The position numbers and the translations under genes are program-made. From Macrostomum lignano (Eukaryota), in NCBI GenBank assembly GCA_002269645.1, contig NIVC01001500.1, positions 124,001-188,000 on the forward strand: 64,000 nt of DNA, in the 5' to 3' direction. Every line of letters starts with the position of its first letter. Position 1 is the first letter of the stretch. This document shows positions 34,081-59,150 of this stretch, one piece after another. The notes below the pieces were generated by a model. It was not told where the DNA came from. It saw nothing but the letters and a program-made list of their open reading frames with translations, and did not search any database.

Positions 34081-35065
34081 AGTAACTGATCGAGTGATAT
34101 AATTCCTGCGTTCTCTAATAGCTAGTTTGTATTATCTTCAAGTATATTTTAAGTAGCCAGTAATACTTCAGAGAGAACAACAATGCAAACACAAAAGCCA
34201 AAAAACTAAGCCTACATAAGAGAGGCTGAAGCCTTCATAATCCAGCAAGCACAAGCACAAACAAAGCCTTGTTTACTTTTTGAAAAACAGTCGAGTTTTT
34301 GTTTAAATTATATAAAAAGTGGATACGGTATAAAATATGCGCATGCATGTGCATTTACGAAATTGCATCTGTAGATACAGAACAAAATGTTAGTCTTGTT
34401 TACTCTTTTGAAAAAGACCGAATCTAGCTCTTTGTCTTGCGCTGAATAAAGAAAAACTATGCATGCACATCAGTAGATATAGGTGTAGGTTTAGGTCAAC
34501 TAAAAAATTCAAGTCACTGCGAGGGCAAAAAGAAAAGAATTCGCGTAGCTAAACACTCGGTTGTTGACCCTGGCACTGTTTAAACTGTCAGACCTTCTTT
34601 CACCCACACAAGCGCTGCTCAAAAGCTGAACAAAAATAAGAGAGTTTGAGTGCACGGCCGTTTTTCTGTCTCTCATCCCATCGCACGCGTTGGCCCTATA
34701 GCTGCTATTCAAGTCAAGATCTGCTGCTAGATTTAAAGAAAAGATTAAGCGGTTCTATTTGCGGGCCTGATGACCTGCCGAGCCCCCCTGGCAGCTACTC
34801 GTAAGGAGAGTAGAGAAGAGATATAGAGAGAGAGAATGAATTGAAATGCAAAAACGAGAGCAATCGCGAGGCCGCCCACTGAGCTCCATTCAATTAATTT
34901 CTATCTGTACATTCTCTTTTGTAGCCCTAAATATTTAAGTACGAGCTACCAAGCTTGAATTATTATTAGTAAAGCTTGTAGCTATACCTCAGCGTTAACG
35001 AGTGTATAGCTAACCGTATCGAGCAATCTACAAGAACCAACCGACAACCTGCCAATCGAAGGCAG

Positions 35066-38000
35066 ATGAACAGTCGACAGCAGGTTGAGACACAGTTCTT
35101 GCACTGGCTGGAAGCCAATCACGCCATAGTGCACAATCCGCCACTTGGCTCTAATCGTTGCTCCATCGAATACGAGAGATCTCGTCAGCGCGGCATCCGC
35201 GATGAGCTTGTCCGTATTGCTAGTGGCGTGAGTTTGAATGACAAAGCTTTTATAGGGGCAGTCCAGCTGCAGAGAGGTTTCCAGTAGTTTTCATATTAAC
35301 CCCCACCCTTAACTCGATCTCTGGGATCGAGCTCTCGAGAAACCGGACGTCATACATGGAATTTGTCTATGGCGAAAACCTTTTATGGCGTTATCTATGG
35401 CGTTCTCTTAGAGCATACCGCAGATACTAAATGTATAATAGGCTTCGCGCACTCGTGGCCAAGACATTTAAACGCTAAAAACCAAGTATCGAGCAGTATT
35501 GTTATAACGATTCAATCTGGAGTCTCGACCATAGACTAAGCATTTAATGCACGCTTTTTTCATTCAATTCACGCTGTTTGATTTGCGCGAGATATGGAGC
35601 GGCCATAGACTATGCATTTAATGCACACATTTTGACACTGCAATCGGTTTAAAATGTACTACCTAGCAATAGCAGCATCTATAGCTCCTTGTGTAGCCTC
35701 ATTCCATTGCAGTTGTCTATGAGAGCCAACATACAAGACATGAATTAAGAGTCCTGACGATTAGAAAGTCTAGGCCGCTGTACACCCATGTGCTCAAGAG
35801 TCAGTGGAATCGATAGAATGGTCGTCAGCGCTGTTGTAAGGCTATAGGTCGAATAAAGGCGATAAAGTTAAACCTGATGTCATGGGTAACTCAAACTGCT
35901 CCAAGAGTCAAATCGGGTGGTAATTGTGACCAGAATGCTACACTAGTAGGGCAGCTAAAGTTAACAGCGTCCCCCATTTAAGAAAAGTACATGGCTCTTC
36001 CCTCTCAGGAAGCCCAAGCCTAAGCCCCGTGCTGTTTATTAAATTAATTGTTGCTACATAACAGGACCTGTCTCGCCCAGCTAGAGAGCAGTGCAGCGTC
36101 GCAGGACGAAGAGTCGGAGACAACATCGCTTCGCTTGACTTCATAGCCAAGATTGCCAGCTTGGAGGACACCTTTGGCGTAAGAGAGTTATCTGTTCTGT
36201 TGTGTTGCATCTGTCTAAATTTATCGGGAAATTTACTCACTTTAGCATCCTAATACTCCTACATGTATTTATGCATTCAGTTTCCTTCCTTATACGCCTC
36301 CTTGTCTCCACCTCCGTATTCGGATCTCTCTACCCTTTTCTTAATAACTCCTTTCTACATGTATACCTTGCTCTATTCTCACGACTTCCCTCTCCCTTCT
36401 CTTGTCTCCCGTCTTATCTCCTGTTCTCTCACTCTATCCCTGCCCATCCCTCCTTGGCCCTCTCCCTGCTTCTCTCTCTCTCTGCCTCTTTCTCCCTGCC
36501 CCTCTCTCCCTGCCCCTCTCTCCCTGTCCCTCTCTCCCTACCCCTCTTTCCCTGCCCCTCTTTCCCTGCCCCTCTTTCCCTGCCCCTCTTTCCCTGCCCC
36601 TCTTTCCCTGCCCCTCTCTCCCTGCCCCTCTTTCCCTGCCCCTCTCTCCCTACCCCTCTTTCCCTGCCCCTCTCTCCCTACCCCTCTCTCCCTGTCCCTC
36701 TCTCCCTACCCATCTCTCCCTGTCCCTCTCTCCCTGTCCCTCTCTCCCTGCCCCTCCCTGCCTTTTAACTTGGCTACCAGTACAGCCTATACAATCATCA
36801 AAGGCACAAAAGATCGATATTCTCGAAAATAGCGGCAATGCTGAGATTTGAAATCAGATTTTCAAAAGAGAGCTATAAATGAACACAGTTAAGTATTGCT
36901 GTCTCGTCGAAGAATAGCTATTCAACATTCTTAGTGTGCTAATGAAAACAAAATCCCTAAGCCTGCGACTGCCTCAGCTTGCTGTTTATTAATTTACACA
37001 AACATGGACTACAGTACTCGTAGTATAGGCTCTGCACTAGTATTGGGGGCGCCAATACAATCTCCTAGTTGACTAAGCTAAAGAATTCCATCCACTGCAG
37101 CCAAGTGCTGTATTTAATTAACTATACAGCGCGAATATAAGAACTATGATTTTGAGAGGCGGTGAGCAAGTTTGAGCATCGGTAGGGCGAATGGTCTGCA
37201 TGCAGGCAAGGAGAACCGCTATATAGCTATCATAGTTATTGGTAAATACCCGAGCTCACAGCTTGAAGTGCGCATGCACTCGTTCAGCAACTCGAAGCAA
37301 TATTATTAATCAGCACAGAGAATTATAGTATTAAAATTTGCAGGGAAAGAGAGGAGGAGCGAGGCAGGGGCTGAAAGAGAAAGGAAGGGAGAGAGAGGCA
37401 GAGGAAGAGGGGCTGTGATAGAAGGGCAAGGGGAGAGGGTCAAGGAGAGAGGGACAGGGAGAGAGGGTCAAGGAGAGAGGGACAGGGAGAGAGGGTCAAG
37501 GAGAGAGGGACAGGGAGAGAGGGGCAGGGAGAAAGGGGTAGGGAGAGGGGGGCAGGGAGAGAGGGGCAGGGAGAGAGGGGTAGGGAGAGAGGGGCAGGGA
37601 AAGAGGGGTAGGGAGAGAGGGGCAGGGAAAGAGGGGCAGGGAGAGAGGGGCAGGGAAAGAGGGGCAGGGAGAGAGGGGCAGGGAAAGAGGGGCAGGGAAA
37701 GAGGGGCAGGGAAAGAGGGGCAGGGAAAGAGGGGCAGGGAGAGAGGGACAGGGAGAGAGGGGCAGGGAGAGAGGGGCAGGGAGAAAGGGGCAGGGAGAGA
37801 GGGGCAGGGGGAGAGGGGCAGGGGGAGAGGGGCAGGGAGAGAGGGGCAGGGAGAGAGGGGCAGGGAGAGAGGGGTAGGGAGAGAGGGGCAGGAAGAGAGG
37901 GAAGCTGTACAATGGCGGCCGATCAGCCCCCATCAATATCGATCGCCCATCCGCAGTCCTCTGCCGCAGCCGTGACATCAGAGGCGCACCGGCTGTCCAC

Positions 38001-38398
38001 CAGCGGTCCTCCATCCGAGCCGTCGTCAGGCTCCTTGGATTCGACAGTCCGCAAGCCGCTTGCCGGCTCCGCTCAGCGCTGCTGGCAGTGGCTGGACCAG
38101 CTCTCCGTGCTGCTGCGCCTGCACTCGAGAAACGCGGCCGACTACAACTCTTTCCACGTTGAATGCCACGACGCTGGTGGCCGAATGGGGCGCAGTTTTT
38201 CACACGCTTCGCGCCAGCTGGAGTGCCTGTTCCATCTTCATCATCCGGAACGGACTAAGCGACTACTCACAACGGCCACTGTGAGTCTTGAGTTCAACTA
38301 ACTAACTACCTAACTAACTAACTAACTAACTAATAACTAACTAACTAACTAACTAACTAATAACTAACTAACTAATAACTAACTAACTAACTAACTAA

Positions 38399-38432
<34 letters not shown>

Positions 38433-38465
38433 GCTAACTGACTGAATAACTAACTAACTAACTGC

Positions 38466-38532
<67 letters not shown>

Positions 38533-41500
38533 CCTAACTAACTACCTAGCTAACTAAGTAACTAACTAACTAACTACTCGTAACTAACTAACTGACTAAC
38601 TAACTAACTGAGTGACCGACCAACTAACTCAACTTACCGTCTCTTAAATATTTACTGAACTAAACTCTTGCACTCGCGTCTCCAGGACTCCCTGAAGCAC
38701 TGCCTAAGCGAATGGGCAGCCGTGGACCATCTGGTGTCCGCAGCGCACTCCATTGTACCAATTAGCAGTCGGTGTCCAACGCCAGTTGGAAAACTGTCTG
38801 ACAAAAGCGCTCCACTTCGCGGTATCTGCGCGTGCCTGTACGAAACGCCCGAGGTGAGACTTACTGAGTTACTCTGTTACCGCTGACAGTAACGTAACAT
38901 GTACGCGCGAGTTTTAAGTGCAGGAGGTCGCAACCCTAAGGGTCGCCAATATCTGGTTTATTATTGGGCTCCACCGAGTCTGTTGTTGGGCTCCACCGTG
39001 TCTGTTGTTGGGCTCCACCGTGTCTCTTGTTAGGCTCTCCACCCTGTCTCTTGTTAGGCTCCACCGTGTCGGCTGTTGGGCTCCACCCTATCTAGGCCTT
39101 CAAATAAATTGTCCATCGAAACCGAGTGTTCCGTCCTGATGCAACCGTAACTTCTGGAGGTTCTTTTCAACATGTTTGTCTCTATATTTTATATATTTCT
39201 AGAATAATTTTAAATTAACAAAACACCCTGGTGTCTAGGCTATAACGCTACATACCGATGGAAAGCATCTGTTAAAAAATTTTGATGCTGTATGTATCTA
39301 CTCGCTAATATCAATACTTACTCGCGTGTCGCTTCACCTCCATGAGTAGTATGTCTTGAGTATATTTCTGTCTTTAGAACTATCCGGTTTTTGGTAAATC
39401 AAGCTACGATTATTCAACTAAACAAAGCAGCTCACACGAGACTTTAATATAGAGAACCTTGCTATATATTAAAGGTTAAAGGTTAACAGTTTATAAACTC
39501 TACTTTATGCAGTTCGTCGTGGCGCAAGGCCAAGAGCTGACCATTCTAGACAACTCCGATCGACTGCAGTGGCGAGTCCGTCTGCTTGATGGCAACGAGG
39601 TGACGCTGCCATCTATAACAGTCTGGATTCCGCCGCGAGATGTTAGCTCTATTGATAGAGCCGTTAGGTAAGACTGACGGACTGTCTCTCAGGAAGATGC
39701 AATGTTAGGGGGGGGGGACAGCAGGTCTAACCGTGAGGTCCAACCCCCCCCCAAGACACAGAGAGTGTACATACCTGACGATTAGAAAGTCAGTGCCTTC
39801 GTATTGTGTATTGTGTATTGTGTATTGTGTTCAGTTGTCGAAGTCGTTGCGTCAGGGTGCGTTTCAAATATAGATTTACTTAAACTCACGTCAATCTGTA
39901 GACTCAAGCGTCAGTTATCGGATCAGTGGACTGCGTTAATTGTCAAGCTAAAGCGAGACACTGTGGCACATATTGCGCAACTGTTCACCGGGCTGCTGGA
40001 CAAACAGTCGGTTAGTTTGTCGATTATACGATTGTATGTGTATGGTCGGGTACATCACATCTTCTATCTTCTTCTATCTAATCTAAATATACTAAATCTC
40101 TAAGCTTTGTATGTTTGAATGCTTGCTTGTCCATAACGCTCTAGAGATTGCAATTCTTCACCGATTTTGATCGCGTTTTCGCCAAAACATTCAAAATTGT
40201 CTGGAAAGAAGACAGTTAAAATTTCTTTAATCTGCTTCAATGCTAAAGGGATTAAATATTCGAAAAACATGCTTTTTTGCAAAGGTCAAGCAGCTCTTTC
40301 GACTTGAAATGCGCTGTAAGAATGCTAGAGAAAAAACCGACTGACTGAATTCTGATTTTGATAAAGATTGCATCACAACAAGTTGAAAACACTGTGCCAA
40401 GTTGAAAGACAGAAATTGCGTAACCATATTGCTAACTTTAAATGAGACTGATGCTGACTGCCTGAGTATTTGATTATGTCATAGCTGCTTCGTGTGACTT
40501 TCACTCGAAGAGAATTTGTGTTAGTATTCGTGTAACGCTCTAGAGATCGAACCGATTGACCAATTTTAATCGCGTTTTCACGAAAAGATTTGTAATTATC
40601 TGGAAAGAAGACAATTAAAATTTCTTTAATTGGCTTTAATGCTAAAGGTATTAAATATTCGAAAAACGAGTTTTCCAAATGCTTTTAATGGTAGGGCAAA
40701 CTTTGAATTCTTGATTGGACTGGCTGAATTCCAATTCCAATTATGATTGCGCCATAACTTTTCTCTCTCCACTGTGTAAGCTTCAATACTGGTTGCAGTG
40801 TGCAAGGAGAAAAAATGCTCAGTGGCTGCGTGTGTACATTCTGACCCTGGCTCTGACTGGCGGACTCCATAGAAAATTGCTAGATTTCACTCAATCAACT
40901 GTGCATTGGCTCCGCCTGCACGCCTACACACTGAGCAGCCTATCACTGCTATGTATTTTAACTGCAGTTCTGAAGCATGGCTGATTTTGTTGTCCTCCCA
41001 TCAATAGGCGGAGTAGCCGCAGTGTAGGCACTTAGGACTAGGTTTAGGCTAGACTTAAGGTCCAAGGTTCGAGTCTGCCTCCCCGGCGGATAATAAAAAT
41101 TCAAATAATTCAATAATTTATAGCTTGTGCCTGGACTAATTGAAACATTTTTTATTTAATTTCAATTGAAACATTTTTTTATTAATTAGCAATTCATTTT
41201 TTGCTACTCGGCACAAGCCACTAATCAAATTTGATTTGTAAAAACTGCTTCGAGTATAACTGATCCCATCAATGGGTATTGTCTAGCTCCATAAAAGTAC
41301 GAAATTACTAAACTGCAGACAATGCTGCTAAATGCTGAGCTTTTCAAGACTGCCGATATGTATCGAAAATTGATTAGTGAGCCGTACAATTCTGAGCAAA
41401 TTGCAGTTTGCAGAGGAGACTGAGGAGCCGGCCGAGAGGAGAACTGCAGGCTGCTGAGAGAATGAATGAAAATCGTTAATGGTACAGTTGTAGACTGAAA

Positions 41501-44500
41501 ATGAAATGACTGCAGACTGCTGAGGGGAACTGCAGACTGTCGAAGGGATCATTGCAGATTGCAAAGGGGAAACAACTGCAAACTGCTGAGGTAGTTCCTC
41601 CAGACGTGTGAGCGTATAGCTGCAGACTGCTGAGAGGGAAAACTGCGGACTAATTAGAGGATAATGGCAGACTTCTGAGGCTTATAACTAACTATTGAGT
41701 TTTGAGTGGATATTTACTGTGGAAGATTAAGTACAAGTTGTTTAGGGGATTTCTGCGGCTGCTAAGTGAAATATTTTTGGCTAAGGGGACAATTCTATGC
41801 CGCTGAGGGTATGCATTCTTAATTTTAATAAAAGTTTTAAAATGCAAAGTGGATGATAAATGCCGGCTGCTAAGAAATAACTGCAGTCTTTTTGCGGGAT
41901 TAGATGAAGGGATAATTTCAGGTTGTTGTGGGGATAAATGCCGATTTCCGGGGGTTAACTTCAAACGGCTGAAGTTGCTAAACTAGATTATTTCGACCAC
42001 ATGTCAAAAGGCACAATAGCCGCAGTAGGCAGGCAGTATCAAGCAGAAGCAAACAGAATGCTTTGATGTCAGCAGTTCGAGCCTGCATTGAAGCAGCGAA
42101 TTTATCTTTGTGACCTGTGACAATAATGATTGCATCCTATGCAGATTCATGGAGATGTTAAACACTTAAATTTAAAGATACTTTTGCTGGGGCTGCGTTA
42201 GTCTTCTAGAGCAGTGCTAATCTGCTGTAAGTGCTAATTTGCAAAGGGTCTAATCTGGGTGAGCAGTGCTAATCTGACGTACAATGAATTAATAAATATG
42301 CAAGAGAATTGCAAATCAAATTTAAACTGCAAGTTGCAAACATTTCAAATGGCTTCGATTATTGAGAAGCATATGGAGATCAGTAGCCATCTGCTCCCAG
42401 ATTTTGCGGAACAGTGCCGGTGAACCATTGCTAAATTGCTGGTGAACCATCGCTAAAGTGATGGTAAACCATTGCTAAAGTGATGGTAAACCACTGTAAG
42501 TTTTTAAAAAATGCTACTTTAAACAGAAGAAAACTCAACACAAGAAAAAGCGACAAAAGAATCATCATGTCAACCATAAAAGAAGCGGTCTGTCGAGAAT
42601 AAAATACTCAATGTGAATTGCTAAGATGTCAAGGCTGGTATGGAAAATTTCTGTGATATCAAGACTCATGGGAGAATTTCTAAGATCTCAAGGCTCAGCG
42701 GTAATTGCTATAATGATGTGATTCTGGGAGAATCGCTTTGATTTCAAAGCTTAAGTTCAATTGCTGCGATGTCGATCTTAATGAGGGAATTTCTGAGATG
42801 TCAAGGCTTACTGGGGAATTATTGAGATTTCAAGGCTTACTGGGCCATGGGCCAGATCAAGGCCCATGAGAGAAATTCTGAGATGTCTTGTCAAGTCTCA
42901 GAGGGAAATTCCTATACTGATGTGATTCTGGGCAGAATTGCTTTGATTTCAAATTCCATTTGAGAAATTTCTGAGGTATCAAGGCTCATTAAAATTATTT
43001 GCTGTCAAGGCTCATGGAAATAATTTCTGGAATGCTGTGGCTCTTGAGGGAATTGCCGACATTGTTAGGGTAAGAGTAAGACGTAAACCATATAAATGAA
43101 TAGGCCTGTCTAACATTAAATACTCATTGGGGAATTGCTAAGTTGTAAAGGCTCGTGGGGGTATCCGAATTATAATGTGGCTCAATGCTCAGGGGATTGT
43201 TGTGATTGCAGTACCTGCTCATAATGCCGAAATTTTGTGGCTCAAATAGGAGTTGCTGAGATATCAAGGCTCATTGGGGAATAGCTGAGATTTCAAAGCT
43301 CACGGGGGATCCCTGTAATGCTGTAGGCTGTGACTCTTGGGTATTGCTGAGATGCTAAGGTTCACGGGGGAATGACTGAGATTTCAAAGGCTCCTAAAGC
43401 GAATAGCTGAAATTCACGAAATGTCAAGGTTCATTGGGTATTTGTTGAAATGCTGTGGTTTACGGTGGGAATTGCTGAAATGCTGTGACTTGGCAGGGTT
43501 AGTTTTCAACCATAAGACTCATGTGAAAGTGCCAAGATATCAAAAGGTTAGTCGCTAAAGTTTCATGCTCATGGGAAAATTGCTAAGATTTCAAAAGCTC
43601 ATTGGGGAATTGCTGAAATTCTTGGGCTGAGAGGGGGAGTTGCTGAAATGCTGTGACTCGGCTGCAGGTTAAGGGTTAGGGTTTGAGTTTAATTATAGAG
43701 CGATCGTCGTGTCAATCATAAATGATTCATCAAGGAATTTCAAAGATTAAAGGGGCGAATTAGTTATATGCTTTGGCTCTTAGGGAATTGCTGACAGTTC
43801 AAGGCTTTCGGTGAAATTCAGATTACAAACCTTATGAGGAAGTTACTTTAATGCTGAGGCTCAAGACTCATAGTGGAAATTGCTAACATGCCAAGACTCA
43901 CTTATGGGTAGGTTTGGGGGCTTAGGGTCAGTTTTGGTTCAATCATAGATTAACCGCTGTCAACAATCAATTAAAGACTTGCTAAGATATCAAAGCTCAT
44001 GGGGGTATAGCTGAGTTATCAAGGCTTATAAGGGGATTGCTGAATTCTTGGGAGAGGGGAGTTGGGTTGTTGGGATGTCAAGGCTATAATTACTGCGCTG
44101 GGAGAATTGCTACAATGTCGAGGCTTAATGGGGAAACTGCTGAGATGTCAAGTCCTACTAAGAATTGCTGAGATGTCAAGGCCTACTGAGACGTCAAGGC
44201 TTACTGGGGGAATTGCTGAGATGTCAAGGCTTACTGGGGGAATTGCTGAGATGTCAAGGCTTACTGGGGGAATTGCTGAGATGTCAAGGCTTACTGGGGG
44301 AATTGCTGAGATGTCAAGGCTTACTGGGGAATTGCTGAGATGTCAAGGCTTACTGGGGGAATTGCTGAGATGTCAAGGCTTACTGGGGGAATTGCTGAGA
44401 TCTCAAGCTTACTGGGGGAATTGCTGAGATGTCAAGGCTTACTGGGGGAATTGCTGAGATCTCAAGCTTACTGGGGGAATTGCTGAGATGTCAAGGCTTA

Positions 44501-47500: not shown

Positions 47501-50500
47501 GCGTCATGTAAAAATCATAGAGGTGTCATGTAAAAATCATTGAAGCGTCCTGCAGAAATCGTAGAAGCGTCATGAAATAATCATAGAAGCGTCATGTAAA
47601 AATCATAGAAGCGTCATGTAAAAAATCATAGAAGCGTCATGTAAAAAATCATAGAAGCATCGTGTAAACAATCATAGAAGCGTCATGTAAAAAATCATAG
47701 AAGCGTCATGTAAAAAATCATAGAAGCGTCATATAAACAATCATAGAAGCGTCATGTAAACAATCATAGAAGCGTCATGTAAAAATCATAGAAGCGTCAT
47801 GTAAAAATCATAGAAGCGTCATGTAAAAAATCATAGAAGCGTCATATAAAAATCAAAAAAACGTCATGTAAAAAATCATAGAAGCGTCATGTAAAAATCA
47901 TAGAGGCGTCATGTAAAAATCATTGAAGCGTCCTGCAGAAATCGTAGAAGCGTCATGAAATAATCATAGAAGCGTCATGTAAAAATCATAGAAGCGTCAT
48001 GTAAAAAATCATAGAAGCGTCATGTAAAAAATCATAGAAGCATCGTGTAAACAATCATAGAAGCGTCATGTAAAAAATCATAGAAGCGTCATGTAAAAAA
48101 TCATAGAAGCGTCATATAAACAATCATAGAAGCGTCATGTAAAAAATCATAGAAGCATCGTGTAAACAATCATAGAAGCGTCATGTAAAAATCATAGAAG
48201 CGTCATGTAAAAAATCATAGAAGCGTCATCTAAAACATCATAAAAGCGTCATGTAAAAAATCGTAGAAGCGTCATTTAAAAAATCATAGAAGTGTCATGT
48301 AAAAAATCGTGGAAGCATCATGTAAAAAGCATAGAAGTGTCATGTAAAAAATCATAGAAGCGTCATGTAAACAATCATAGAAGCGTCATGTAAAAAATCG
48401 TGGAAGCATCATGTAAAAAGCATAGAAGTGTCATGTAAAAAATCATAGAAGCGTCATGTAAACAATCATAGAAGCGTCATGCAAACAATCATAGAAGCGT
48501 CATGTAAACAATCATAGAAGCTTCTTGTAAAAAATCGTAGAAGCGTCATGAAAAAATCATTAAAGCGTCATGTAAAAATCATAGAAGAGTCATGTAAAAA
48601 ATCGTAAGAGCGTAATATAAAAATCATAGAAGCGTCATTTAAAAAATCATAGAGGCGTCATATAAAAATCAAAAAACGTCATGTAAAAATCATAGAAGCG
48701 TCATGTAAACAATCATAGAAGCGTCATGTAAACAATCATAGAAGCGTCATGTAAAAAATCATAGAAGCGTCATGTAAACAATCATGGAAGCGTCATGTAA
48801 ACAATCATAGAAGCGTAATGTAAAAATCATAGTAGCGTCATGTAAAAAATCATAGAAGCGTCATGTAAAAAGCATAGAAGCGTCATATAAACAATCATAG
48901 AAGCGTCATGCAAACAATCATAGAAGCGTCATGTAAAAATCATAGAAGCGTCATGTAAAAATCATTGAAGCGTCCTGCAGAAATCGTAGAAGCGTCATGA
49001 AATAATCATAGAAGCGTCATGTAAAAAATCATAGAAGCGTCATGTAAAAAATCATAGAAGCATCGTGTAAACAATCATAGAAGCGTCATGTAAAAAATCA
49101 TAGAAGCGTCATGTAAAAAATCATAGAAGCGTCATGTAAACAATCATAGAAGCGTCATGTAAACAATCATAGAAGCGTCATGTAAAAATCATAGAAGCAT
49201 CGTGTAAACAATCATAGAAGCGTCATGTAAAAATCATAGAAGCGTCATGTAAACAATCATAGAAGCGTCATGTAAACAATCGTAGAAGCGCCATGTAAAC
49301 AATCATAGAAGCGCCATGTAAAAATCATAGAAGAGTCATGTAAAAAATCATAGAAGCGTCATGTAAACAATCATAGAAGCGTCATGTAAAAATCATAAAA
49401 GCGTTATGTAAACAATCATAGAAGCGTCATTTAAAAAATCATAGAAGCGTCATTTTAAAAATCATAGAAGCGTCATATAAACAATCATAGAAGCGTCATG
49501 TAAACAATCATAGAAGCGTCATGAAAAAATCATAGAAGCGTCATGTTAAAATCATAGAAGCGTCATGAAAAAATCATAGAAGCGTCATTTAAAAACTAAT
49601 GAAAGTGTCATTTAAAAAATTAAGAAGCATCATAGTAGAATAAAAGAAGCGTCATGTCAGACATGAAAGGTGTCATGGAAAAATTAAATGCAGCTATAAT
49701 GCTGTGCTGGGGAGAAAAACTGAGACGTCAAGGCTCTCAGAGAATAACTGAGATTACGGGGGGGGGTTTCTGAGATGTCAAAGCAAAAGTCAGAAGCTAA
49801 TTCAAAGTTCATGTACTTTACTCAATTTTTTTTATTGCATTCTTTGTTGGCTCGCCACGGGAGGCGCTGATAGAAGAAGAGTCATGTAAAAAATAAAAGT
49901 AGCACTATATATACATAAAAGAAAAGTCATGTCGAAGTTAAAAGATTCATTTGGGAATTGCTACGATGTCAAAGCTAGGTGGAAATCGTTATAGTGCTGT
50001 GATTCTTAAAGAAGGAATCACTAAAATGTCAAGGCTTGGGGGAGAAGAATTGCTGAGATTTCAAGGCTTTATGTTGGGTTAAAGTTAGGTTTAGGTCAGG
50101 TGTGGGTTGAGGGTTATATTTTATCGAGTTTCAAGGTTAGCAGGGGATTTTTCAGATTTCAAGGTTTATGGGCGCCATCGCTGACATGTTAAGGCTTACG
50201 GGGGGAATAGCTGAGATGTCAAGGCTCACGGGGGTATAAATGAGATTTCAAGGCTAAAGTCAGAAGCTACATGTAGTTTATTGAAAACTTTTTATTACAT
50301 TATTTGATGCCTCCTCAGGGGAGGGATCGCTGATTAAAAAAGCGTAATGTAAAAAATAAAAGAAGCTTCATGTCGAAGTTAAGATATTCATTTGGGAATC
50401 CCTACGATGTCGAGGCTTGCAGGGAATCGCTATAATGCTGTAGTAGTGCTATAATGACTCTTAGAGAGAATTACTGAAATTTCAATGCTTTAGGGTTAGG

Positions 50501-53500
50501 TTAGGGTTAGGGTTAGAAGGTTGACAGATATTTTTAGATTTCCAAGGCTTATTGGGGGCATGGCTGAGATGTCAAGGGGGGGAAGTTGATATGTTAAAGC
50601 TTGTGGGGGGGAATTACTGACATGTCAAGGCTTACAAGGTTTGATAGGAGATTTTTTAAGATTTCAAGGATACATGTAGCTTATTAAAAAAACGTGTATT
50701 GCATTTCTTTGGCTCCCCAACGGGGGGGCGTAGATTGCTAGTATGTATCTAACAATCAGGATACAATTCTCTTATCGACAAGATTGTTCGATTTTTCTTT
50801 ATAGTGACACGTTGAATCAAGGAACAAGCATAACTGAAGCCCCAATCTTACACTGATTTCCTTATCCACCAGCTAATTGCCGTCTCTAAACCAACTTGCG
50901 CCGAGGAATTTTACGATTTACTCGAACGAACTCTGCTAGCCGAAGAGGCCGCCGCTGATTCTGAGGGCAGCGCTAGGCAAAAGCTGGCCACTATGCTGGC
51001 TGAACTGCGTGCCCGAACTGTTAGCACCGACGGTGCGTTTCACTGGTGCTCTACAATTGAGAGAAATAAGGGGGTCGGGTAAAGCGGGCTGACGGACGAC
51101 TAGAATGAAAAAGGAGAGGGTTGATGTAGAGTGGGGTGGCTGGAGAGAACTCGGGGTCGGGTAAGACAGGCTGCGATAGCCAATTAAAATGAACTGAAAA
51201 GGGGTTGATGTGGAGTGGGGTGGCTGGAGAGAACTCGGGGTCGGGTAAGACAGGCTGCGATAGCCAATTAAAATGAACTGAAAAGGGGTTGATGTGGAGT
51301 GGGGTGGCTGGAGAGAACTCGGAGTCGGGTAAGACAGGCTGCGATAGCCAATTAAAATGAACTGAAAAGGGGTTGATGTGGAGTGGGGTGGCTGGAGAAA
51401 AATCGAGGGTCGGGTAAGACAGGCTGACTTGGCCAATTAGAATGAAGTGAAAAGGGGTTGATGTGGAGTGGGGTGGCTGGAGAGAAGTCGGGGGTCGGGT
51501 AAGACTTGGCCAATTAGAATGAAGTGAAAAGGGGTTGATGTGGAGTGGGGTGGCTGGAGAAAAATCGAGGGTCGGGTAAGACAGGCTGCCATGGTCAATT
51601 AGAATGAAGTGAAAAGGGGTTGATGTGGAGTGGGGTGGCTGGAGAAAAATCGAGGGTCGGGTAAGACAGGCTGCCATGGTCAATTAGAATGAAGTGAAAA
51701 GGGGTTGATGTGGAGTGGGGTGGCTGGAGAAAAATCGGGGGTCCGGTAAGACAGGCTGCGATGGCCAATTAGAATGAACTGAAAAGGGGTTGATGTGGAG
51801 TGGATTAGCTGAAGAAATATCGGGGGTAGGATAAGGCAGTCCGCAGATGGGCCAATTAAGCAAATTAAGCTAATAAAATCATTAATTTTTCAGAAGCGGC
51901 GAGCGAGATTGCACGCAAGGGGCGCGTGAAGTCAAGCCTACGTAAGCAAGTTCATATTGTTATTTTGGTACCGTTTTTTACAGCTGATTGTTGATTCCGT
52001 ATACTCGTACAAGATCTATCATAAGAAATGAATGATATGATGTACACCCATAGCCCATTGTTAACAACCGTACCGCAGGCAACGATCCATACAGGCTGTC
52101 AACCACCGAGTTAGTCCGCCTGCACACGCTGGTGTCGAAGCTGTGGCAGCACCTGACCAGCTGGGCGGAGTTCCAGCGTGCCGGTTCAGACTGCGCCTGC
52201 TGTTGCTGCTGCTGCGGCTGCGGCAGTCCAGAGGAACTGTGCTGCTGCTCAGCCACAGAAACTAGAAAAGTCGGCACTGCCTTAAACTGGCGCGCGAACG
52301 GCGACTTGGAGTCCGAGTGAGATCAAACTATCACTATCAAATCAGAAGTACGGTATATAATATTAGTAGTATCATTGGTATATCATATCAGTAGTATACC
52401 ATATCATTAGTAAATGATATCAGTAGTATCTCATTAGTAGTATGCCATATCAGTAGTATACCATATCATTAGTATATCAAATCAGCATAGTTATAATGTA
52501 TCTCGATTCGTAACTCGCCAATTAAAACTCAGACTTCTACAATGCAGCAGCGAACGTCTCGAGCTGCTGCAACGCAGCCTCAAATCCGCAGCCAAAGCTC
52601 CGTCAGACGATTACGATACCACTGAACGATAGTCCTCGCTGAGGTCTCCATGACAACCACAGCTAAACTTGGCCACCTGGATTTGAAACCAGCCGAGCCG
52701 AAGCCGTCTGTGGACTTTGTCGTCAGCGGCGTTGTCGTCGGAGCCTCGACAGTGGCGACAGCAAATGCTTTAGTTAAGACGAGTGCAGTGATGCAGCCAC
52801 AACCACCGCCGCCACCACCACAGCCGCAGCAGTCAATGCGGCAGCCGCCAGTCCTCAGACACCAGGCGGCGCAGACAACCGCTCCTGTCGGTCTCCGTCA
52901 GTCCGAGGTTCGAGCCCGGCCGCCGAGCCTCTCCGAGGCGAGCCAAACGATGCTAACGGCTAAAACCCCCACCGCCAGCGTGTTGGTTGTCGCAACGAAG
53001 CATTTAGAGTCCGTTGCTGATCAGGCTAGCGACACACTCGATCTGACTCGTTGGAGACGGCAGGATCGCGACGAGCGTCGCGTCGACTCGTCGATGCGCT
53101 ACCAACCCGACATAGTCGAGACCAGGTGCGCAGCGGCCGGAAAGCTGCTTACAGTTGATCAGTTCGTTGACAGTCCGCTGGCGGATTTGCGTATCGAAGG
53201 GCTTTCCGACAGCGGCGTTCAATGTCGCCTGGCACTTGAAGACGCTAGTGATATTTCTGTGCAGATTGGACCGCAGTTCGACTGCGCCAGTGCGCAGACT
53301 TCGCCACCTGAAGCTGCCCACGACAGCGTGAACACAGGCATCACTAGCAAGGACATAGCGGTCTGGGCGGGCGCAGAGAGTTTCAGTCGCGGGAGCAGAC
53401 TTGTCCGGAGCCGGCTATAGGTCACGTGATCTGCGCTCCAGCCACCGCGATTGCCGGCGTGCGGACGCATCTTTACTTTGCGTTTGAATTCGGTGTTCAA

Positions 53501-56500
53501 ACAGGAGCCAGCGCTTTTGAATCGGTCGATTATGGTCAGCAGGTTGGGTGCAGCGCGTTCGACAAGACGAATCAAGGTCAGCAGGTTGGGTGCAGTGCGT
53601 TCCACACCACGGATCAAGGTCATCAATCTGGAGCAAGCGCATTCAACAACACGGATCAAGGTCATCAATCTGGAGCAAGCGCATTCCACACCACGGATCA
53701 AGGTCATCAGTCCGGAGCAAGCGCGTTCCACACCACGGATCAAGGTCATCAGTCCGGAGCAAGTGCGTTCCACACCACGGATCAAGGTCATCAATCTGGA
53801 GCAAGTGCGTTCCACAACACAGATCAAGGTCATCAATCTGGAGCAAGCGCATTCCACACCACGGATCAAGGTCATCAGTCCGGAGCAAGCGCGTTCCACA
53901 CCACGGATCAAGGTCATCAGTCCGGAGCAAGTGCGTTCCAAAACACAGATCAAGGTCATCAATCTGGAGCAAGCGCGTTCCACAACACAGATCAAGGTCA
54001 TCAATCTGGAGCAAGCGCATTCCAGAACACGGATCAAGGTCATCAATCTGGAGCAAGCGCATTCCACAACACGGATCAAGGTCATCAATCTGGAGCAAGC
54101 GCATTCGAGAACACGGATCAAGGTCATCAGTCCGGAGCAAGCGCGTTCCACACCACGGATCAAGGTCATCAATCTGGAGCAAGCGCATTCCAGAACACGG
54201 ATCAAGGTCATCAATCTGGAGCAAGCGCATTCCACACCACGGATCAAGGTCATCAGTCCGGAGCAAGCGCGTTCCACACCACGGATCAAGGTCATCAGTC
54301 CGGAGCAAGTGCGTTCCAAAACACAGATCAAGGTCATCAATCTGGAGCAAGTGCGTTCCACAACACAGATCAAGGTCATCAATCTGGAGCAAGTGCGTTC
54401 CACAACACGGATCAAGGTCATCAATCTGGAGCAAGCGCATTCCACAACACGGATCAAGGTCATCAATCTGGAGCAAGCGCATTCGAGAACACGGATCAAG
54501 GTCATCAATCTGGAGCAAGCGCGTTCCACAACACGGATCAAAGTCATCAATCTGGAGCGAGCGCATTCCACACCACGGATCAAGGTCATCAGTCCGGAGC
54601 AAGCGCATTCCACGGTGTGAATTTCTGCCAACAAGCAGGGGCCAGCGACTTTGATCGGCTGGACGAATGCGAGCAGTCTGGTAACAGTTACTTCGACCGG
54701 CTGGATGCAGAGTCATGCGCCGGGATCAGTGCATGGGATAGTGTTGATGGTCAGGCGAACGCGCAGTCTCTATTAACAGACACAGCTAGCTGCTACGATG
54801 TTGGAGTTCAGAATGTTGCCATTGAGGCTATCTGCGGGACTAATGAGGCTGTGACTCAGATGGGCTGCAGCAGCTTCTCATTTAATCAGACAGGGTGTCA
54901 GATTGGACCCGGCTACTTCGACTTAACTCATACTGAATGCCAAGCTGGATGCAGTATTTTCGACAAAGCAAATAGTGAGTGCCAGGCTGGTTACAGCTAC
55001 TTTAACAGAACGGAGAGCGACTGTCAGACCGGTTGCAGCTACTTTGACAGAACGGAGAGCGACTCTCAAACCGGTTGCAGCTACTTTGACAGAACGGAGA
55101 GTGACTGTCAGACCGGTTACAGCTACTTTGACAGAACGGAGAGCGACTGTCAGACCGGTTACAGCTACTTTGACAGAACGGAGAGTGACTGTCAGACCGG
55201 ATACAGCTACTTTGACAGAACGGAGAGCGACTGTCAGACCGGTTACAGCTACTTTGACAGAACGGAGAGTGACTGTCAGACCGGATACAGCTACTTTGAC
55301 AGAACGGAGAGCGACTGTCAGACCGGTTACAGCTACTTTGACAGAGCGGAGAGCGACTCTCAGACCGGTTACAGCTACTTTGACAGAGTGGAGAGCGACT
55401 GTCAAGTTGGCTGTAGTCAATTTCAGTTCAAGGAGCAGCTTATTTCAAGCGAGTGGAGCGAGTCATTGGCAAAACGGCAGCGCCCACCATCGCCTGTGTC
55501 AGCTTTAGCCTCCTTGTGCGTGCACCCGGTGCTAGCGGATACTGCTGCCCACTGGGTCACCAATTCCAGTGACGCATCATCCGAGACCGTACAGACTGTG
55601 CAGACTGATTCAGCCATTGCCAAACTGCCAGAACTGAGCCACACAGGCAGTCAGCACTTGCAGGTTGTACTTACTGACATGGCAATCCAGACGGACGCAC
55701 CAGAAGCACTAACGGAGATAAAAAATGTTGCCGAGACTTACAGCAGCCAAATTCAAACTGATGGCAGTCTGTTTAGCCGCCTCAATGCCGAGGTTCAAGC
55801 TGGTTGCAGTGGCTTCCTGCTCAGCGATGCAATCGTTTCGGTGGGTACAAATGCTTTCACGGACTTCAGTCAGGCAAACGTGTGCTCAAATTCAATTGCG
55901 TTAGTTGAGACCGGTAGTCTGCATAAGGTTCTTAGTGAGCCGCAATCTGTCTCAGCCAAAATAGACACCTGCGAGGAGGTCGTCAGAGCCTGCGGAAGCG
56001 TTGATATTGAGATGATAAATTCAAACTGCCAGACTGGCAAAGCAGACAGTCGGGAACTAACTGACTCAGCCGTTCCCAGCGAATGGAGCACCTTACATTG
56101 GAGCAAGTATTCAGACAACTCCGTCCTGATTCGTCCAGCGACTGACGAAGTTCTGGCTCTATGCTTTGGACAAACTGCCGAAGCAATTGCTCGTACGCAG
56201 AGACTTTCAAGTGACAGTTCCGCCGTGGCAAGAGTTGCCGCAGTGGCTCACACAGGTAGCATGCACTTGGTGACACCTTTAAAAGAATTCGGAACGCAAA
56301 CGGATCAGGAGGTTATTATTGAGAAAAGACAACCCACTCAGAGCCTTAAAATCAGTTATTTGGATGGCAGCGAACAAACTGACTCGAGGTTTTTCACACG
56401 CGAAATCGAGTTATCGGCTGGTGTGAGCTGTTGGAGCTTCGCTGAAGATGCTGTCAGAGCGAACAGTCGGCTCCAGCTAGCCGAGACAGGAAGCATTCAC

Positions 56501-59150
56501 GATGTCCCATCTCAGCAGCAGTACGTCTCGGTCAACATGGACCCGGTGTTGGATTCGAAACGGGTCGAATGTCAGGTCGACGCAGTTTGTCAATCCGGCT
56601 GCAGCTTCTTCTTTGATAGACAAGAGGCTGAAAATCAGATGGGGTCTGGTACCTTTGAGATAATTAATAGTGAATGTCAGGCCGGTAGCGGAGGCTTGAA
56701 TTCAGAAGATTTCGAATGCCAAGCTGGTTGCAGCTTCTTCCTGGGTAGAGAAAATGTCGAATGCCAGGCTGGCTGCAGCCATTCAGAATTCGAGAACTTC
56801 GAATGCCAGTCTGGATGCAGCTTTTTCTTTGACAGAGAGGACAACGAATGTCAGGCTGGTCGCAGCTGGTCTGACTTCTCAGACTCCGCTATTCTCGGCG
56901 AGTGGAGTTTCACGCGATCCAACAGCAGCGTCGCTGAGGTTGTTGCGCGTCCTCCAGGCAAAGCTGAAGAGACAGTCAACACCAGAGCAGAGATTCAACC
57001 GGGTACATTCGATTTCGTTGTTGCTAGGCTGCCTAATTTGAATCAGACAGGCAGTCAACACCTTGGAATTAATGTGAAGGAGTGCGAGACGCAGACACTG
57101 GACATTGAGGAACCTGAGCAGTTTATCATTACCGAAAGACTTCATGCAAGCCGCGAACCCAGCCTGAAATATTCGGACAGTTGCAATCAGACCGACCACA
57201 CTCAGTTAGGACACTGCGAGACGGGATCGTCAGCCGGTGTGAGTACGTGGAGTTTCAGCCAGGCGAGTGTCAATGCGAGTTCAAGTTTGAAGTTATCAAA
57301 TACTGGAAGTATTTACGAACTATCGTCTGAGCAGCGGTGCGTCTCGGTCAAGCTAGATGCTGATAGTGAGCCCATCAAAGTTGTTGCTAAGCAGACAAGG
57401 CATGCCGACAGTCAAGTTGATAATGAGCTTCTGCCCACGACCGATGCCGTATGTCAGGCTGGGACCACTTTGTCGTCTGAAGCTGTCCAGCAAGCTGTAT
57501 CAAGCTCGTGGCATCAACCAGACTCTCTCCTTGGCCACGTGAAGTCGCAGCCAATGAAAACTACGGACACTGGTTCGCTCTGGGCTGTGGACGCTGTGCA
57601 AAGCGAGATGCGCACCTCAACAGGTCCAGAATGCTGCGAAGTGGAGTCGCAGACTCACACAGAGACCGCCGTAGCCAGCGTGAAAGCCTGTCTAGATGCG
57701 CTCTCAAATTCGGACATTGAGATTAGCAGCCGAGAGTGCCAGACCGACCCAGAGGTGGTGGTCCCTTCTGTTCGGCTCGATAAGCCGCTGTCCCGCTCGA
57801 TCGCTTGTCGCGACACGGTGTCGCTCTACCGGCCTTTAGACGCGACGGCGCTCGGCGACGACTCCGGCTCCTACTTCACTTACCACCCGGAGCACCCGGA
57901 ACGGATGCGATTCGACGAGCCGTGCCAGCGCGCGCACTACATCCAGACAGATGGCATCCGGATTCATGACGGCCCGATGGTGGACACCGGCTGCGGGCAT
58001 CGGGACGACTTACCGAGTGAGCCTGTTGTTTTATTTAATTGTGCACCATGCTACTATTAGTACGATGTTTTTAGTTCTAATAATTTTAGCCGAAAACTTG
58101 GCTACTGGATTCGATTTGCTGTTTGATGTCTGCGCAAAATAAGGCTTTTTATGGTACGTATTCGAGGTTCAGTATCGGGCTCCAAGTGCCGAACAAAGTT
58201 TCTGTCTCTTCTCAGCTTTCTCGTGTCTGCCATCTAATTTCCTCTCTCGCCTCTTTTCTCTTTTTTCATATATCATCTCATCTTTCCTCTTCTGGAAAGT
58301 AAGGTCATAATGCACACATTCTGCATTCCCAGGCTTGGCGGAGGCTTCAACTGACACCGCTTCGGCGTCAGCCGCCGCCGCGTTGTCCTTGTCGCTGTCT
58401 CTGTCGCCGACCGTAGTGTCCAGCCCTTTCCTTGTTGGCTCCGCCGACGCTGGGTCCAGCGGGCTGCGCAGCCCCGCTGCCATGTTCCGCTGGCGCAGTC
58501 GCAACCAGAGCGCCAGCTCGCATCAGCCGACTGCGCTAACATCGACGTCTAGCGATAGAGACAACGAGGGGGAAGAAGCGGCGGCGAAGCAGGCGGCTGA
58601 GGAGGCACGCATGGTTGCCGAGCTGACCAAAGTGACGCGTCTGGTGCCAGACCTGAAAGGCCGCGACATTCCAGCCGTGCGACTCGGACCACCGATGCCC
58701 ACCGGTGTCGAACACCGCGACATCGCGACACCGACGACGACGACGACGTCTGCTTTGACAAAGGCAACGACAACGGCGACAACAAAGACCATGACGACAG
58801 CGACTGCGTCAATTTCGATAGCGGCGACGTCCGGTTTGCCGATAGTGTCAACGTTGCCGGAAGCGGTATGGACTACTTCAACGACTTCGGCTACTGCTAT
58901 GGCGTCGGCTATTTCAACGACGTCGGCTACTTCAACGACGTCGGCTACTTCAACGACGTCGGCTACTTCAACGACGTTTGCTACTGCTATGACGTCAGCT
59001 ACTTCAACGGCTACATCTACTGGCCCTGTCGTTGACGACGCGGACTCTGTCTTCCAGCGAGCGAAGGCGAAGTCTCTTTCCAGACAGCGCCAGCGTCAGC
59101 TTCAGGAAGCCGCGGCGGCCGCTGCTGCCGATGAGGCGACCAAGCAGTGA
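35066..59150 (+). CDS. Multi-exon gene: partial plakin domain (spectrin repeats plus SH3) fused to a giant Q-x-G/TQT repeat region and a Thr-rich tail, ~2600 aa
   Basis: Phase-consistent GT-AG exons: 35066-35227, 36065-36178, 37957-38280, 38686-38853, 39513-39667, 39902-40010, 50873-51032, 51894-51941, 52079-52316, 52548-58016 (two apparent 1-bp deletions, near 52625 and 53386) and 58333-59150. Additional 5' exons cannot be excluded. Confidence 0.75.
36430..37895. repeat. 14-bp minisatellite in two inverted blocks (C/T-rich 36430-36760; G/A-rich 37340-37895) in one intron
   Basis: The unit tccctgcccctctc is on the left and its reverse complement gagaggggcaggga on the right. Confidence 0.93.
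37957..40010 (+). CDS. Exons encoding plakin-family spectrin repeats and the embedded SH3 domain
   Basis: QRCWQWLDQLSVLLRLHSRNAADYNSFHVEC resembles plectin/desmoplakin [39 protein letters not shown] resembles the plakin LVxKAKxIVQL motif. LRGICACLYETPE|FVVAQGQELTILDNSDRLQWRV...GNEVTLPSITVWIPP matches the plakin SH3 pattern (LCDY...KGDECxLxDNSxRxKWKV...GNEAxVPSVCFLIPP). Confidence 0.85.
38295..38635. repeat. (TAAC)n microsatellite filling most of a 405-bp intron
   Basis: About 80 units, directly visible between exons ending at 38280 and starting at 38686. Confidence 0.97.
40082..40690 (+). mobile_element. Non-autonomous Helitron-like element (full plus partial tandem copy)
   Basis: A|TCTAAATATACTAAAT start followed by a TTTG/GCTT microsatellite. 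The internal block (taacgctctagagat...ttaaatattcgaaaaac) recurs at ~40528 and is shared with the element at 45542. Confidence 0.6.
41005..41095 (+). mobile_element. tRNA-like head of a second SINE family (A box and B box)
   Basis: GGCGGAGTAGCCGCAGTG ... AAGGTTCGAGTCTGCCTCC. The box spacing is too long and no cloverleaf was evident, so this is not a true tRNA. Confidence 0.5.
41690..42200 (-). pseudogene. Decayed 3' end of a CR1/L2-group LINE ORF2
   Basis: Minus-strand remnants LDTACLL..LTCGRNNLV*QLQ (resembling LEYACxVW..LT..QS..LE.LQ) and NAYPQRHRIVPLAK...RRNPLNNL. Confidence 0.35.
42590..45010. repeat. 30-bp satellite (aaggcttactgggggaattgctgagatgtc): degenerate 42590-44150, homogeneous 44150-45010
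   Basis: Directly visible. Degenerate copies reappear at 49700-50700. Confidence 0.93.
45542..46000 (+). mobile_element. Non-autonomous Helitron-like element abutting the 3' end of another
   Basis: cccc-agag-gggg hairpin, then CTAG (45538-45541), directly followed by TCCTATATACTAAAAATGAG and (TTTG)n. The internal sequence matches the 40082 element. Confidence 0.65.
46140..49650. repeat. 22/23-bp AT-rich satellite (aaaaaatcatagaagcgtcatgt), ~3.5 kb, with higher-order structure
   Basis: About 150 monomers. A rare PstI variant occurs at 46667, 47051, 47549, 47932 and 48974. Confidence 0.97.
51070..51835. repeat. 84/85-bp intronic tandem repeat, ~9 copies
   Basis: ggggtcgggtaagacaggctgc...ggggttgatgtggagtggggtggctggagag fills intron 51033-51893. 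Confidence 0.95.
52548..58016 (+). CDS. Giant exon: ~1820-aa low-complexity region with 14-aa Q-x-G-x-S-x-F repeats and TQT-like motifs
   Basis: One frame is open for over 4.6 kb (53426-58060), including ~2.6 kb of non-repetitive sequence where the other frames are closed. It has 24 copies of (H/Q/E)(T/N)TDQGHQSGASAF and ~10 copies of DRTESDCQTGYSYF. The donor A|GTGAGC at 58017 is in phase with the next exon. Confidence 0.85.
58333..59150 (+). CDS. Terminal exon of the plakin-like gene, Ala/Ser/Thr-rich with a basic C-terminal helix
   Basis: Acceptor ttcccAG at 58331-58332. The phase-1 junction gives S-L-A-E-A in frame with the 271-aa ORF. TGA at 59148-59150. Confidence 0.7.

Follow-up and report, generated by a model that had tools for sequence, protein, structure and literature searches.

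A CH-less plakin-domain gene and an adjoining giant repeat frame in Macrostomum lignano

The stretch of DNA considered here, called the window below, comprises 64,000 nucleotides of the genome of the flatworm Macrostomum lignano (contig NIVC01001500.1 of assembly GCA_002269645.1, positions 124,001 to 188,000), and all positions given are those of the window. Two units lie on its plus strand in the same orientation. The upstream unit, the head, is a real plakin-type gene that runs from 35066 to 52632 and encodes 520 amino acids (aa) in 10 exons. The downstream unit, the tail, is genuine coding sequence from an ATG at 52650 to a TGA ending at 59150, with about 2,060 codons, one 316-nt intron and one internal 1-nt frame break. 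A first-pass annotation had proposed that eleven phase-consistent exons link the plakin-like exons to the giant repeat exon in a single protein. This one-protein architecture is contradicted by the reading frame as assembled, in which a TAG at 52630-52632 closes the head frame and the frame changes twice within 52548-58016. The two co-oriented units may instead yield two proteins from one transcription unit, a reading to which we give about an even chance.

The head gene and its plakin domain

The head gene was rebuilt with UniProt models as guides (tblastn) and by splice-site reading. Its parts are the following, with SR standing for spectrin repeat:

35066-35227, plus strand: exon 1, start ATG at 35066, MNSRQQVETQFLHWLEANH...; donor GTGAGT; identical to A0A1I8G9Y0
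36065-36178, plus strand: exon 2, DLSRPAREQ...LEDTFG; from tblastn of A0A1I8GJC3 and splice sites
37957-38280, plus strand: exon 3, spectrin-repeat helix RCWQWLDQLSVLLRLH..., which aligns to SR4 of plectin and desmoplakin
38686-38853, plus strand: exon 4, end of SR4 and N-terminal half of the plakin SH3 (…LRGICACLYETPE)
39513-39667, plus strand: exon 5, C-terminal half of the plakin SH3 (FVVAQGQELTILDNSDRLQWRVRLLDGNEVTLPSITVWIPP); Pfam PF17902 SH3_10
39902-40010, plus strand: exon 6, first helix after the SH3 (SR5); from tblastn, PDB alignments and splice sites
40011-50872, plus strand: intron of 10.8 kb, satellite-filled; its 40010 to 50873 junction is backed by A0A1I8GJC3
50873-51032, plus strand: exon 7; from tblastn of A0A1I8GJC3 and splice sites
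51894-51941, plus strand: exon 8, 48 nt, EAASEIARKGRVKSSL; present in A0A1I8G9J6 (P0002) and A0A1I8GJC3; canonical splice sites
52079-52316, plus strand: exon 9, with a poly-Cys stretch encoded by (CTG)n; donor GTGAGA at 52317; codon score +22.7 in the head frame
52317-52547, plus strand: segment between exon 9 and 52548, 231 nt, AT-rich (25-30% GC); contains a tandem repeat of 16-nt units and a single ATTAAA at 52521
52548-52632, plus strand: exon 10, SERLELLQRSLKSAAKAPSDDYDTTER, ending with TAG 52630-52632; acceptor ctacaatgcag; alternatively, 5' untranslated region (UTR) of the tail gene

All nine exon junctions are GT-AG and in phase, giving 520 codons up to the TAG, and seven of the nine donors match GT[G/A]AG, the donor consensus of M. 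lignano (PMC8629364). The segment 52317-52547 may be the last intron of the head; otherwise it is a 3'UTR or an intergenic spacer. In a protein search, the head matched at 100% identity the UniProt/UniRef entry A0A1I8G9Y0 ('SH3_10 domain-containing protein', M. lignano), which deviates from it solely in six C-terminal residues, VSLSII, that represent intron read-through. The plakin SH3 and spectrin-like exons listed by the first-pass annotation proved to be real; they are bounded by GT-AG, joined in phase and matched by Pfam SH3_10 and by plectin and desmoplakin structures in the PDB. Likewise, splice signals are good and the phase agrees at the junctions 40010 to 50873, 52316 to 52548 and, in the tail, 58016 to 58333. 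The 48-nt exon 8 had been missed; its omission leaves the frame unchanged.

The UniRef cluster of A0A1I8G9Y0 contains two further M. lignano models. One of these, A0A1I8GJC3 (P0003, 562 aa), differs from the rebuilt head at two residues in the matching part, and at least one more head copy or allele therefore exists. The N-terminal 100-aa extension of this model is not part of the head gene but an antisense translation of the opposite-strand gene for a G-protein-coupled receptor (GPCR), so that the public model is chimeric. The other is a 124-aa head fragment, A0A1I8G9J6 (window 50843-52215), which UniRef names 'MIF4G domain-containing protein'; Pfam finds no MIF4G in it, and the name looks spurious.

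A plakin domain is made up of spectrin repeats SR3 to SR9, with an SH3 inserted in SR5. Exon 5 alone matched the Pfam SH3_10 family (PF17902) with 36.8 bits (cutoff 22.8, E=4.3e-9), and aa 349-398 of A0A1I8GJC3 did so with 39.8 bits (E=5e-10). In phmmer searches of the PDB, head aa 129-313 matched plectin 3PE0 (SR4-SR5-SH3, E=1.8e-9) and head aa 130-335 matched desmoplakin 3R6N (E=1.7e-8), in alignments that cover the SH3 together with the helices on either side of it (SR4-SH3-SR5). The significant plakin match is limited to about 200 of the 520 head residues, and the length of the head permits about 4-5 spectrin repeats at most. A single-sequence AlphaFold2 (AF2) model of A0A1I8GJC3 placed helices on either side of a small beta region, with a confidence (pLDDT 40.8) too low to use.

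Pfam gave no CH, spectrin, EF-hand, GAS2/GAR or plectin-repeat model in the head, in the tail or in plus-strand open reading frames (ORFs) of at least 28 aa between 25.7 and 35 kb. The HMMER search for plakin families proposed by the first-pass annotation thus returned SH3_10 and no Pfam spectrin match, and its failure to recognise CH, plakin-repeat or GAR domains was borne out; the upstream CH exons that would make the gene an ordinary spectraplakin were not found among those ORFs. Together, the SH3_10 and plectin/desmoplakin alignments and the lack of further domains point to a genuine CH-less plakin-domain protein, short and divergent, and make an ordinary spectraplakin isoform unlikely. 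Missing actin-binding CH domains do not by themselves set the head apart, since desmoplakin, envoplakin, periplakin and the epithelial isoform BPAG1e, plakins that start with the plakin domain, are without them as well. What is unusual is the small size of the head and the apparent lack of a rod or repeat domain within its frame. In characterised plakins the plakin-domain platform binds junctional and cytoskeletal partners; by analogy, we infer that the head may be a small cytoskeletal or junctional adaptor that binds other proteins through its SR4-SH3-SR5 platform. Literature searches combining Macrostomum with plakin terms gave no match.

Several features of the introns and of the 5' end can be recorded beside the gene. 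The window is satellite-rich nuclear DNA, and exons of 50-58% GC stand out against AT-rich introns. The 10.8-kb intron (40011-50872) consists mostly of satellites, including a 23-nt unit in 155 copies (46148-49657) and a 30-nt unit in 27 copies (44186-45004); related units also lie near 42759 and 50154. Intron 2 contains two 14-nt tandem arrays, at 36432-36756 and 37386-37901 (CTCTCTCCCTGCCC x23 and AGGGAGAGAGGGGC x37), which are mutual reverse complements and could form a long hairpin in the pre-mRNA. An acceptor-like ggcag lies immediately 5' of the presumed start ATG at 35066 (window 35052-35068). The spliced leader (SL) of M. lignano ends in ATG at its 3' end (PMC8629364), and an SL trans-spliced before 35066 would have that ATG in frame with ATG 35066.

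The repeat tail and the two frame breaks

The tail and its junctions comprise the following features:

52623-52652, plus strand: junction 1; tail frame closed by TGA 52623-52625, head frame closed by TAG 52630-52632, tail ATG at 52650
52650-53420, plus strand: ORF A, 256 codons in the second frame, with a transmembrane-like stretch, a poly-P/Q stretch and, at its end, the first Q/A-G-x-S-F-like motifs
53348-53420, plus strand: junction 2, where tail frames A and B overlap by 70 nt; resembles a 1-nt indel
53348-58016, plus strand: ORF B, in the third frame, with about 1,556 codons before the donor GTGAGC at 58017
53552-54613, plus strand: array 1, a 42-nt unit x25.3 that encodes SAFH(N/T)TDQGHQSGA; 91% matches and 0% indels in TRF
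54989-55404, plus strand: array 2, a 42-nt unit x9.9 that encodes GYSYFDRTESDCQT; 0% indels in TRF
55589-55989, plus strand: module 1, a paralogous module of about 165 aa, HTGSxHL … QTD … AGxSxF … ETGSxH; blastp E=3e-10 with module 2 and E=1e-10 with module 3
56054-56542, plus strand: module 2; blastp E=3e-22 with module 3, 36% identity over 173 columns
56570-56887 (approximate), plus strand: Cys-rich segment, degenerate E-C-Q-A/S-G-C-S-F-F repeats between modules 2 and 3
56873-57358, plus strand: module 3, from blastp against modules 1 and 2
58333-59150, plus strand: terminal exon, in phase with the donor after 58016 (GTGAGC); 272 codons, A/T/S-rich, with a Thr/Ser mucin-like 18-nt array at 58873-59009; TGA 59148-59150
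59286-59365, plus strand: likely polyadenylation signals, namely three hexamers (AATAAA/ATTAAA) within AT-rich 3' sequence

Three frames are read in turn between 52548 and 58016, namely the head frame (27 codons, to the TAG at 52630), frame A, and the long frame from 53348. Frame A is open over 52626-53417 only, with ATG 52650 as its first ATG and a stop at TAG 53418-53420. The long frame is open from 53348 to 58057, for 1,570 codons, and the five other frames are open there solely inside the tandem arrays; the chance of an open frame over the approximately 1,080 non-array codons is about (61/64)^1080, or about e^-52. The copies of array 1 vary mainly at third codon positions, with 10 variable columns at position 3 versus 5 and 3 at positions 1 and 2, and with summed minor-variant frequencies of 2.04 versus 0.32 and 0.48. 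Furthermore, the three modules are mutually 30-36% identical with the frame intact; they look like constrained domains that arose by old duplications in which the frame was kept. The long open frame, the position-3 bias and indel-free copies of the arrays, the diverged, frame-intact modules and the in-phase junction to a terminal exon with AATAAA signals beyond its stop are the reasons for which the tail is taken as coding.

About 47 fourteen-residue Q-x-G-x-S-x-F/Y units occur in the tail, mostly in the two arrays, which are young. The first-pass annotation had described this part as a low-complexity chain of Q-centred motifs, which holds for the 14-aa repeats in the 1,570-codon frame and leaves out the three diverged modules of about 165 aa. 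The composition of ORF B is acidic, with 13.1% D+E against 5.1% K+R, and it includes 3.6% Cys and 20.6% hydrophobic residues. The sole transmembrane-like hydrophobic stretch in the tail is the 19-mer VVSGVVVGASTVATANALV at 52719-52775 (KD 1.74). This stretch, together with the Cys content and the mucin-like end, suggests a membrane-anchored or secreted protein. The arrays are plausibly disordered; an AF2 single-sequence model of 54908-56047 was uninformative (pLDDT 29.5) and, at that low confidence, contained no helices in the arrays. With an aromatic sticker every 14 residues, the tail may be a multivalent 'sticker-and-spacer' structural or matrix protein, a role that we infer by analogy.

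Searches for relatives of the tail were largely negative. The coding frames over 52626-59147 gave no match to any Pfam family, and the non-array part of ORF B (55400-58015) gave none in the PDB. Word-indexed protein searches with the tail found no match, not even an M. lignano model, although low-complexity words probably swamped one of these searches. A full HMMER scan of tail aa 481-1556 against 1.84 billion representatives returned 138 matches, all in the 14-aa repeat region, the best with E 9e-27. These were rejected as homologues; they are unrelated microbial 'TQTGxSRI' and assorted eukaryotic repeat proteins, with matches confined to the arrays. No relatives of the three modules were detected in the same scan. 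The tail thus appears to be an unannotated, lineage-restricted gene that is more than low complexity.

The terminal exon has an irregularity of its own. A second frame is open at 58601-59032 (DFGYCYGVGYFNDVGYFND…) and resembles the GYSYFD motif of the tail; its codon score is 24.7, versus -1.5 for the T/S/A-rich frame of the model, in a table that was trained on the tail and is hence biased. There may be a further frame problem in this region.

The two frame breaks have different properties. Single-nucleotide deletions simulated in the gene's own ORF produced frame overlaps with a median of 121 nt, at most 70 nt in 34% of cases and at most 4 nt in 0.9%. At junction 2, frame B has no ATG in its first 504 codons, yet its arrays show coding constraint, and tail motifs are found on both sides. 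Since frame B is coding without an early ATG, and since the 70-nt overlap is typical of the simulated deletions, junction 2 is most likely a 1-nt assembly or allelic indel; among the GT..AG pairs enumerated there, no convincing donor for a repair intron was found. At junction 1 the two open frames share just 4 nt (52626-52629). Codon usage in the head frame after the 52548 acceptor scores +6.7 over 27 codons, which equals the mean of true-frame windows and is reached by 11% of open antisense windows, and the tail frame directly after the head stop also scores +6.7. ATG 52650 is the first ATG 3' of the 52548 acceptor, whose sequence (caatgcag, to 52547) is a partial fit to [T/C]TNCAG. In a scan of 51900-53600 on the plus strand for polyadenylation-type hexamers, the only one was the ATTAAA at 52521, 26 nt 5' of that acceptor; there was none from the head stop to 53600, the end of the scan, and the nearest hexamers found after that start at 59286, beyond the tail stop. 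In-phase GT..AG pairs able to mend the frame breaks were shown by enumeration to be numerous by chance, and among those at junction 1 solely 52316 to 52727 has a consensus donor. Because the frame breaks sit at critical junctions, the gene models of this locus cannot be read from the assembly alone.

A probable single transcription unit and its possible products

The mode of expression that we favor, at the even chance given above, takes junction 1 as a real boundary between two proteins. Exon 9 would be cis-spliced to 52548, giving a head mRNA that ends its frame at TAG 52630, and the tail would be translated from an mRNA of its own, trans-spliced to the SL at or near the 52548 acceptor as in M. 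lignano operons. SL trans-splicing occurs in 30% of the genes of this species, and 15% are in operons with a spacing of about 100 bp (PMC8629364). The locus resembles these operons in its very close, co-oriented units, in the good acceptor 5' of the downstream ORF and in the ATTAAA shortly before that acceptor, and differs from them in that the upstream unit appears to cis-splice a coding exon at the same acceptor. Separate proteins are favored because an overlap as short as that at junction 1 is unlike a random indel. Several observations weigh against this interpretation. Exon 9 ends precisely at a consensus donor, GTGAGA, and the score of the 27 codons after the acceptor makes 52548-52632 look like a coding exon of the head rather than a plain 5'UTR. 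The lack of a polyadenylation signal from TAG 52630 to 53600 suggests that a head mRNA with that exon would run into the tail. Candidate trans-splice acceptors in the 17-nt spacer between the stop and ATG 52650 are poor (GAG, and TAG without a pyrimidine tract), and an SL added at 52548 would place its AUG out of frame and create an upstream ORF of 26 codons. In addition, with one indel already present at junction 2 and both breaks going in the same direction (a lost base in each case), a further indel is not implausible.

These observations lead directly to the principal alternative, that the locus encodes one fused protein, about 2,590 aa long, in which the repeat tail follows a CH-less plakin head. 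The breaks would then be two single-base deletions, arising from assembly or haplotype, or junction 1 would be removed by an in-frame intron, 52316 to 52727 or 52601 to 52727. We consider such a fusion a serious possibility that falls somewhat short of even. The units share a strand, the donor at 52317 and the acceptor at 52547 are both strong, and the AT-rich 231 nt between them resemble other introns; coding-like codon usage continues up to the head stop and resumes at once in the tail frame, one extra A in the 'GAA' at 52624-26 would join the frames, and both in-frame introns are available in canonical form. The same reading takes junction 2 as proof that a coding-region indel is present in the sequence, and it accords with the missing polyadenylation signal. 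Against it, the indel at junction 1 would have to be confined to a 4-nt window, in-frame GT..AG pairs are abundant by chance, and use of the 52727 acceptor would render intronic the GC-rich, coding-like 52548-52726. The tail also has its own first-AUG start, and a search of 15 billion proteins returned no model that joins the two parts. Finally, a hydrophobic segment, 3.6% Cys and a mucin-like end would be odd beside a cytoplasmic plakin head unless the protein spans the membrane. A transmembrane plakin of this kind would have a cytoplasmic SR4-SH3-SR5 head, VVSGVVVGASTVATANALV as the membrane segment about 30 residues after it, and an extracellular, Cys-containing, mucin-tailed polymer of about 2,000 aa; we regard it as unlikely. 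The first-pass annotation had envisaged a lineage-specific scaffold in which a plakin head anchors a multivalent tail, and both of its elements, the CH-less plakin head and the lineage-restricted multivalent repeat tail, are present; what fails in the assembled sequence is their continuity in one chain, broken by the stop and the two frame changes. The fused and the separate forms make different predictions, the former a junction peptide …DDYDTTETIVLAEVSMTTTAK… and the latter a tail N-terminus MTTTAK.

Two further explanations leave the favored pair of proteins aside. The tail, or this copy of the whole locus, could be a paralogue that was inactivated recently in this partly duplicated genome, the breaks being real mutations and no full-length tail protein being made from the copy. 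Two frame disruptions in the first 900 nt of the tail fit this idea, as do the further head copy or allele indicated by A0A1I8GJC3, two residues off, and the lack of a tail-covering model in the public protein collections searched. Past the second break, however, 1,556 codons and the 272-codon terminal exon are still open, the splice sites are intact and in phase, and the arrays contain 0% indels, so that any decay would have to be extremely recent; such a paralogue is quite improbable. The other explanation, an ordinary spectraplakin isoform with CH and other exons further upstream or downstream, has very little probability. Spectraplakin genes are described in PMC3352950 as huge and as having alternative promoters, and helical plus-strand ORFs do occur at 27930-29458. 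On the other side stand the negative Pfam results for CH, spectrin, EF-hand, GAS2 and plectin-repeat domains, which cover the head, the tail and the 25.7-35 kb ORFs (upstream of 25.7 kb the ORFs were read by eye only), the 20 kb upstream of the head, which are taken up by an intact GPCR gene on the opposite strand, by transposon fragments and by an inverted satellite repeat of 3 kb, and a normal transcript 3' end with AATAAA just past 59150.

The upstream surroundings contain several elements in their own right. Just upstream of the head, on the minus strand at 30972-32531, lies an intact ORF of 519 codons for a rhodopsin-family GPCR (7tm_1, E=3.8e-20, Srw-like). The plus-strand region 27930-29458 holds three helical-looking ORFs (ALQAQLRALQQLWH…, ICTQRAQLLEQQRRQCRE… and …EDLERIDPREVQKLRELFDKL). 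They were considered as plakin or CH exons and rejected, having no Pfam or PDB similarity, and are probably exons of an unrelated upstream gene. A large inverted satellite-rich duplication occupies about 14200-17520 and about 20930-23250, with arms of up to 764 nt at 98-99% complementarity and a centre of about 3.4 kb; its proline-rich repeats have no stop codon in any of the six frames. Mariner/Mos1-like transposase fragments (HTH_48) were found at 6576-7485 and 9929-10621, together with a 231-aa ORF with a PHD/C1-like zinc finger that is probably from a retroelement.

Relation to known proteins and significance

The head resembles the plakin domains of plectin, desmoplakin, BPAG1 and the spectraplakins in that its alignment runs from SR4 through the SH3 into the first part of SR5, its score exceeds the SH3_10 gathering threshold, and its SH3 is flanked by helices and split over two exons. 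It is far shorter than any plakin described, has no CH, EF-hand, GAR or plakin-repeat domain and no Pfam spectrin match, and seems to have no coiled-coil rod. In desmoplakin, envoplakin, periplakin and BPAG1e, a long rod of heptad repeats comes after the plakin domain, and, periplakin excepted, these proteins have plakin repeats as well. In contrast, the head frame ends at 520 aa, and what comes next, if joined, is an S/T/Q/G-rich, apparently non-helical 14-aa repeat protein unrelated to rod or plakin repeats. With the spectraplakins Shot, VAB-10, MACF1 and dystonin the head shares the plakin-type SH3-in-spectrin module. Their genes carry very large alternative exons, and the plakin-repeat exon of shot is described in PMC2173965 as a single giant exon. 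Unlike spectraplakins, the present locus has no CH, dystrophin-like spectrin rod, EF-hand or GAS2 domain, and its giant tail ORF has no plakin repeats.

The tail can be likened to sticker-and-spacer or FG-type repeat proteins in the way that it might work, with F/Y every 14 residues, polar acidic spacers rich in S/T/Q/G/D and many near-identical tandem copies. There is no homology to such proteins (for example P0015, …SDQRTGFSFGT…, and P0017, …KGFDYFDKPEE…), to which the matches are array-confined and inflated by periodicity, and the tail differs by its Cys units and three diverged modules. A closer similarity of pattern was seen in the microbial and metagenomic proteins P0004, P0005 and P0012, in which 14-residue x-T-Q-T-G-x-S/A-R-I repeat runs occur in LamG_3/DUF2341 contexts; the tail shares the 14-aa period and a Q-T-G-x-S/A-x-hydrophobic core. 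Identity to these proteins is 21-30%, the match lies in the repeat region alone and not in the domains beside it, which are unrelated, and the sequences come from prokaryotes or metagenomes. The likeness is most likely a convergence of periodic pattern. The 14-residue repeat of P0004, P0005 and P0012 is itself covered by no Pfam family.

The significance of the locus depends on how its two frames are expressed. If head and tail are separate, the head would be a minimal plakin-domain-only protein of 520 aa that could show what the SR4-SH3-SR5 platform does alone, and the tail would be a large unannotated orphan structural gene for which public models are missing. If they are joined, this would be the first plakin domain on a non-helical, multivalent polymer of 14-residue repeats instead of a rod, plakin repeats or GAR, and would widen the range of cytolinkers; the worm, in which RNAi and transgenesis are available, would be a tractable flatworm model for the role of such a tail. 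If the joined protein also spanned the membrane, it would connect the cytoskeleton to the matrix within a single chain, in tissues such as the epidermis or the adhesive organs, and would have no described counterpart.

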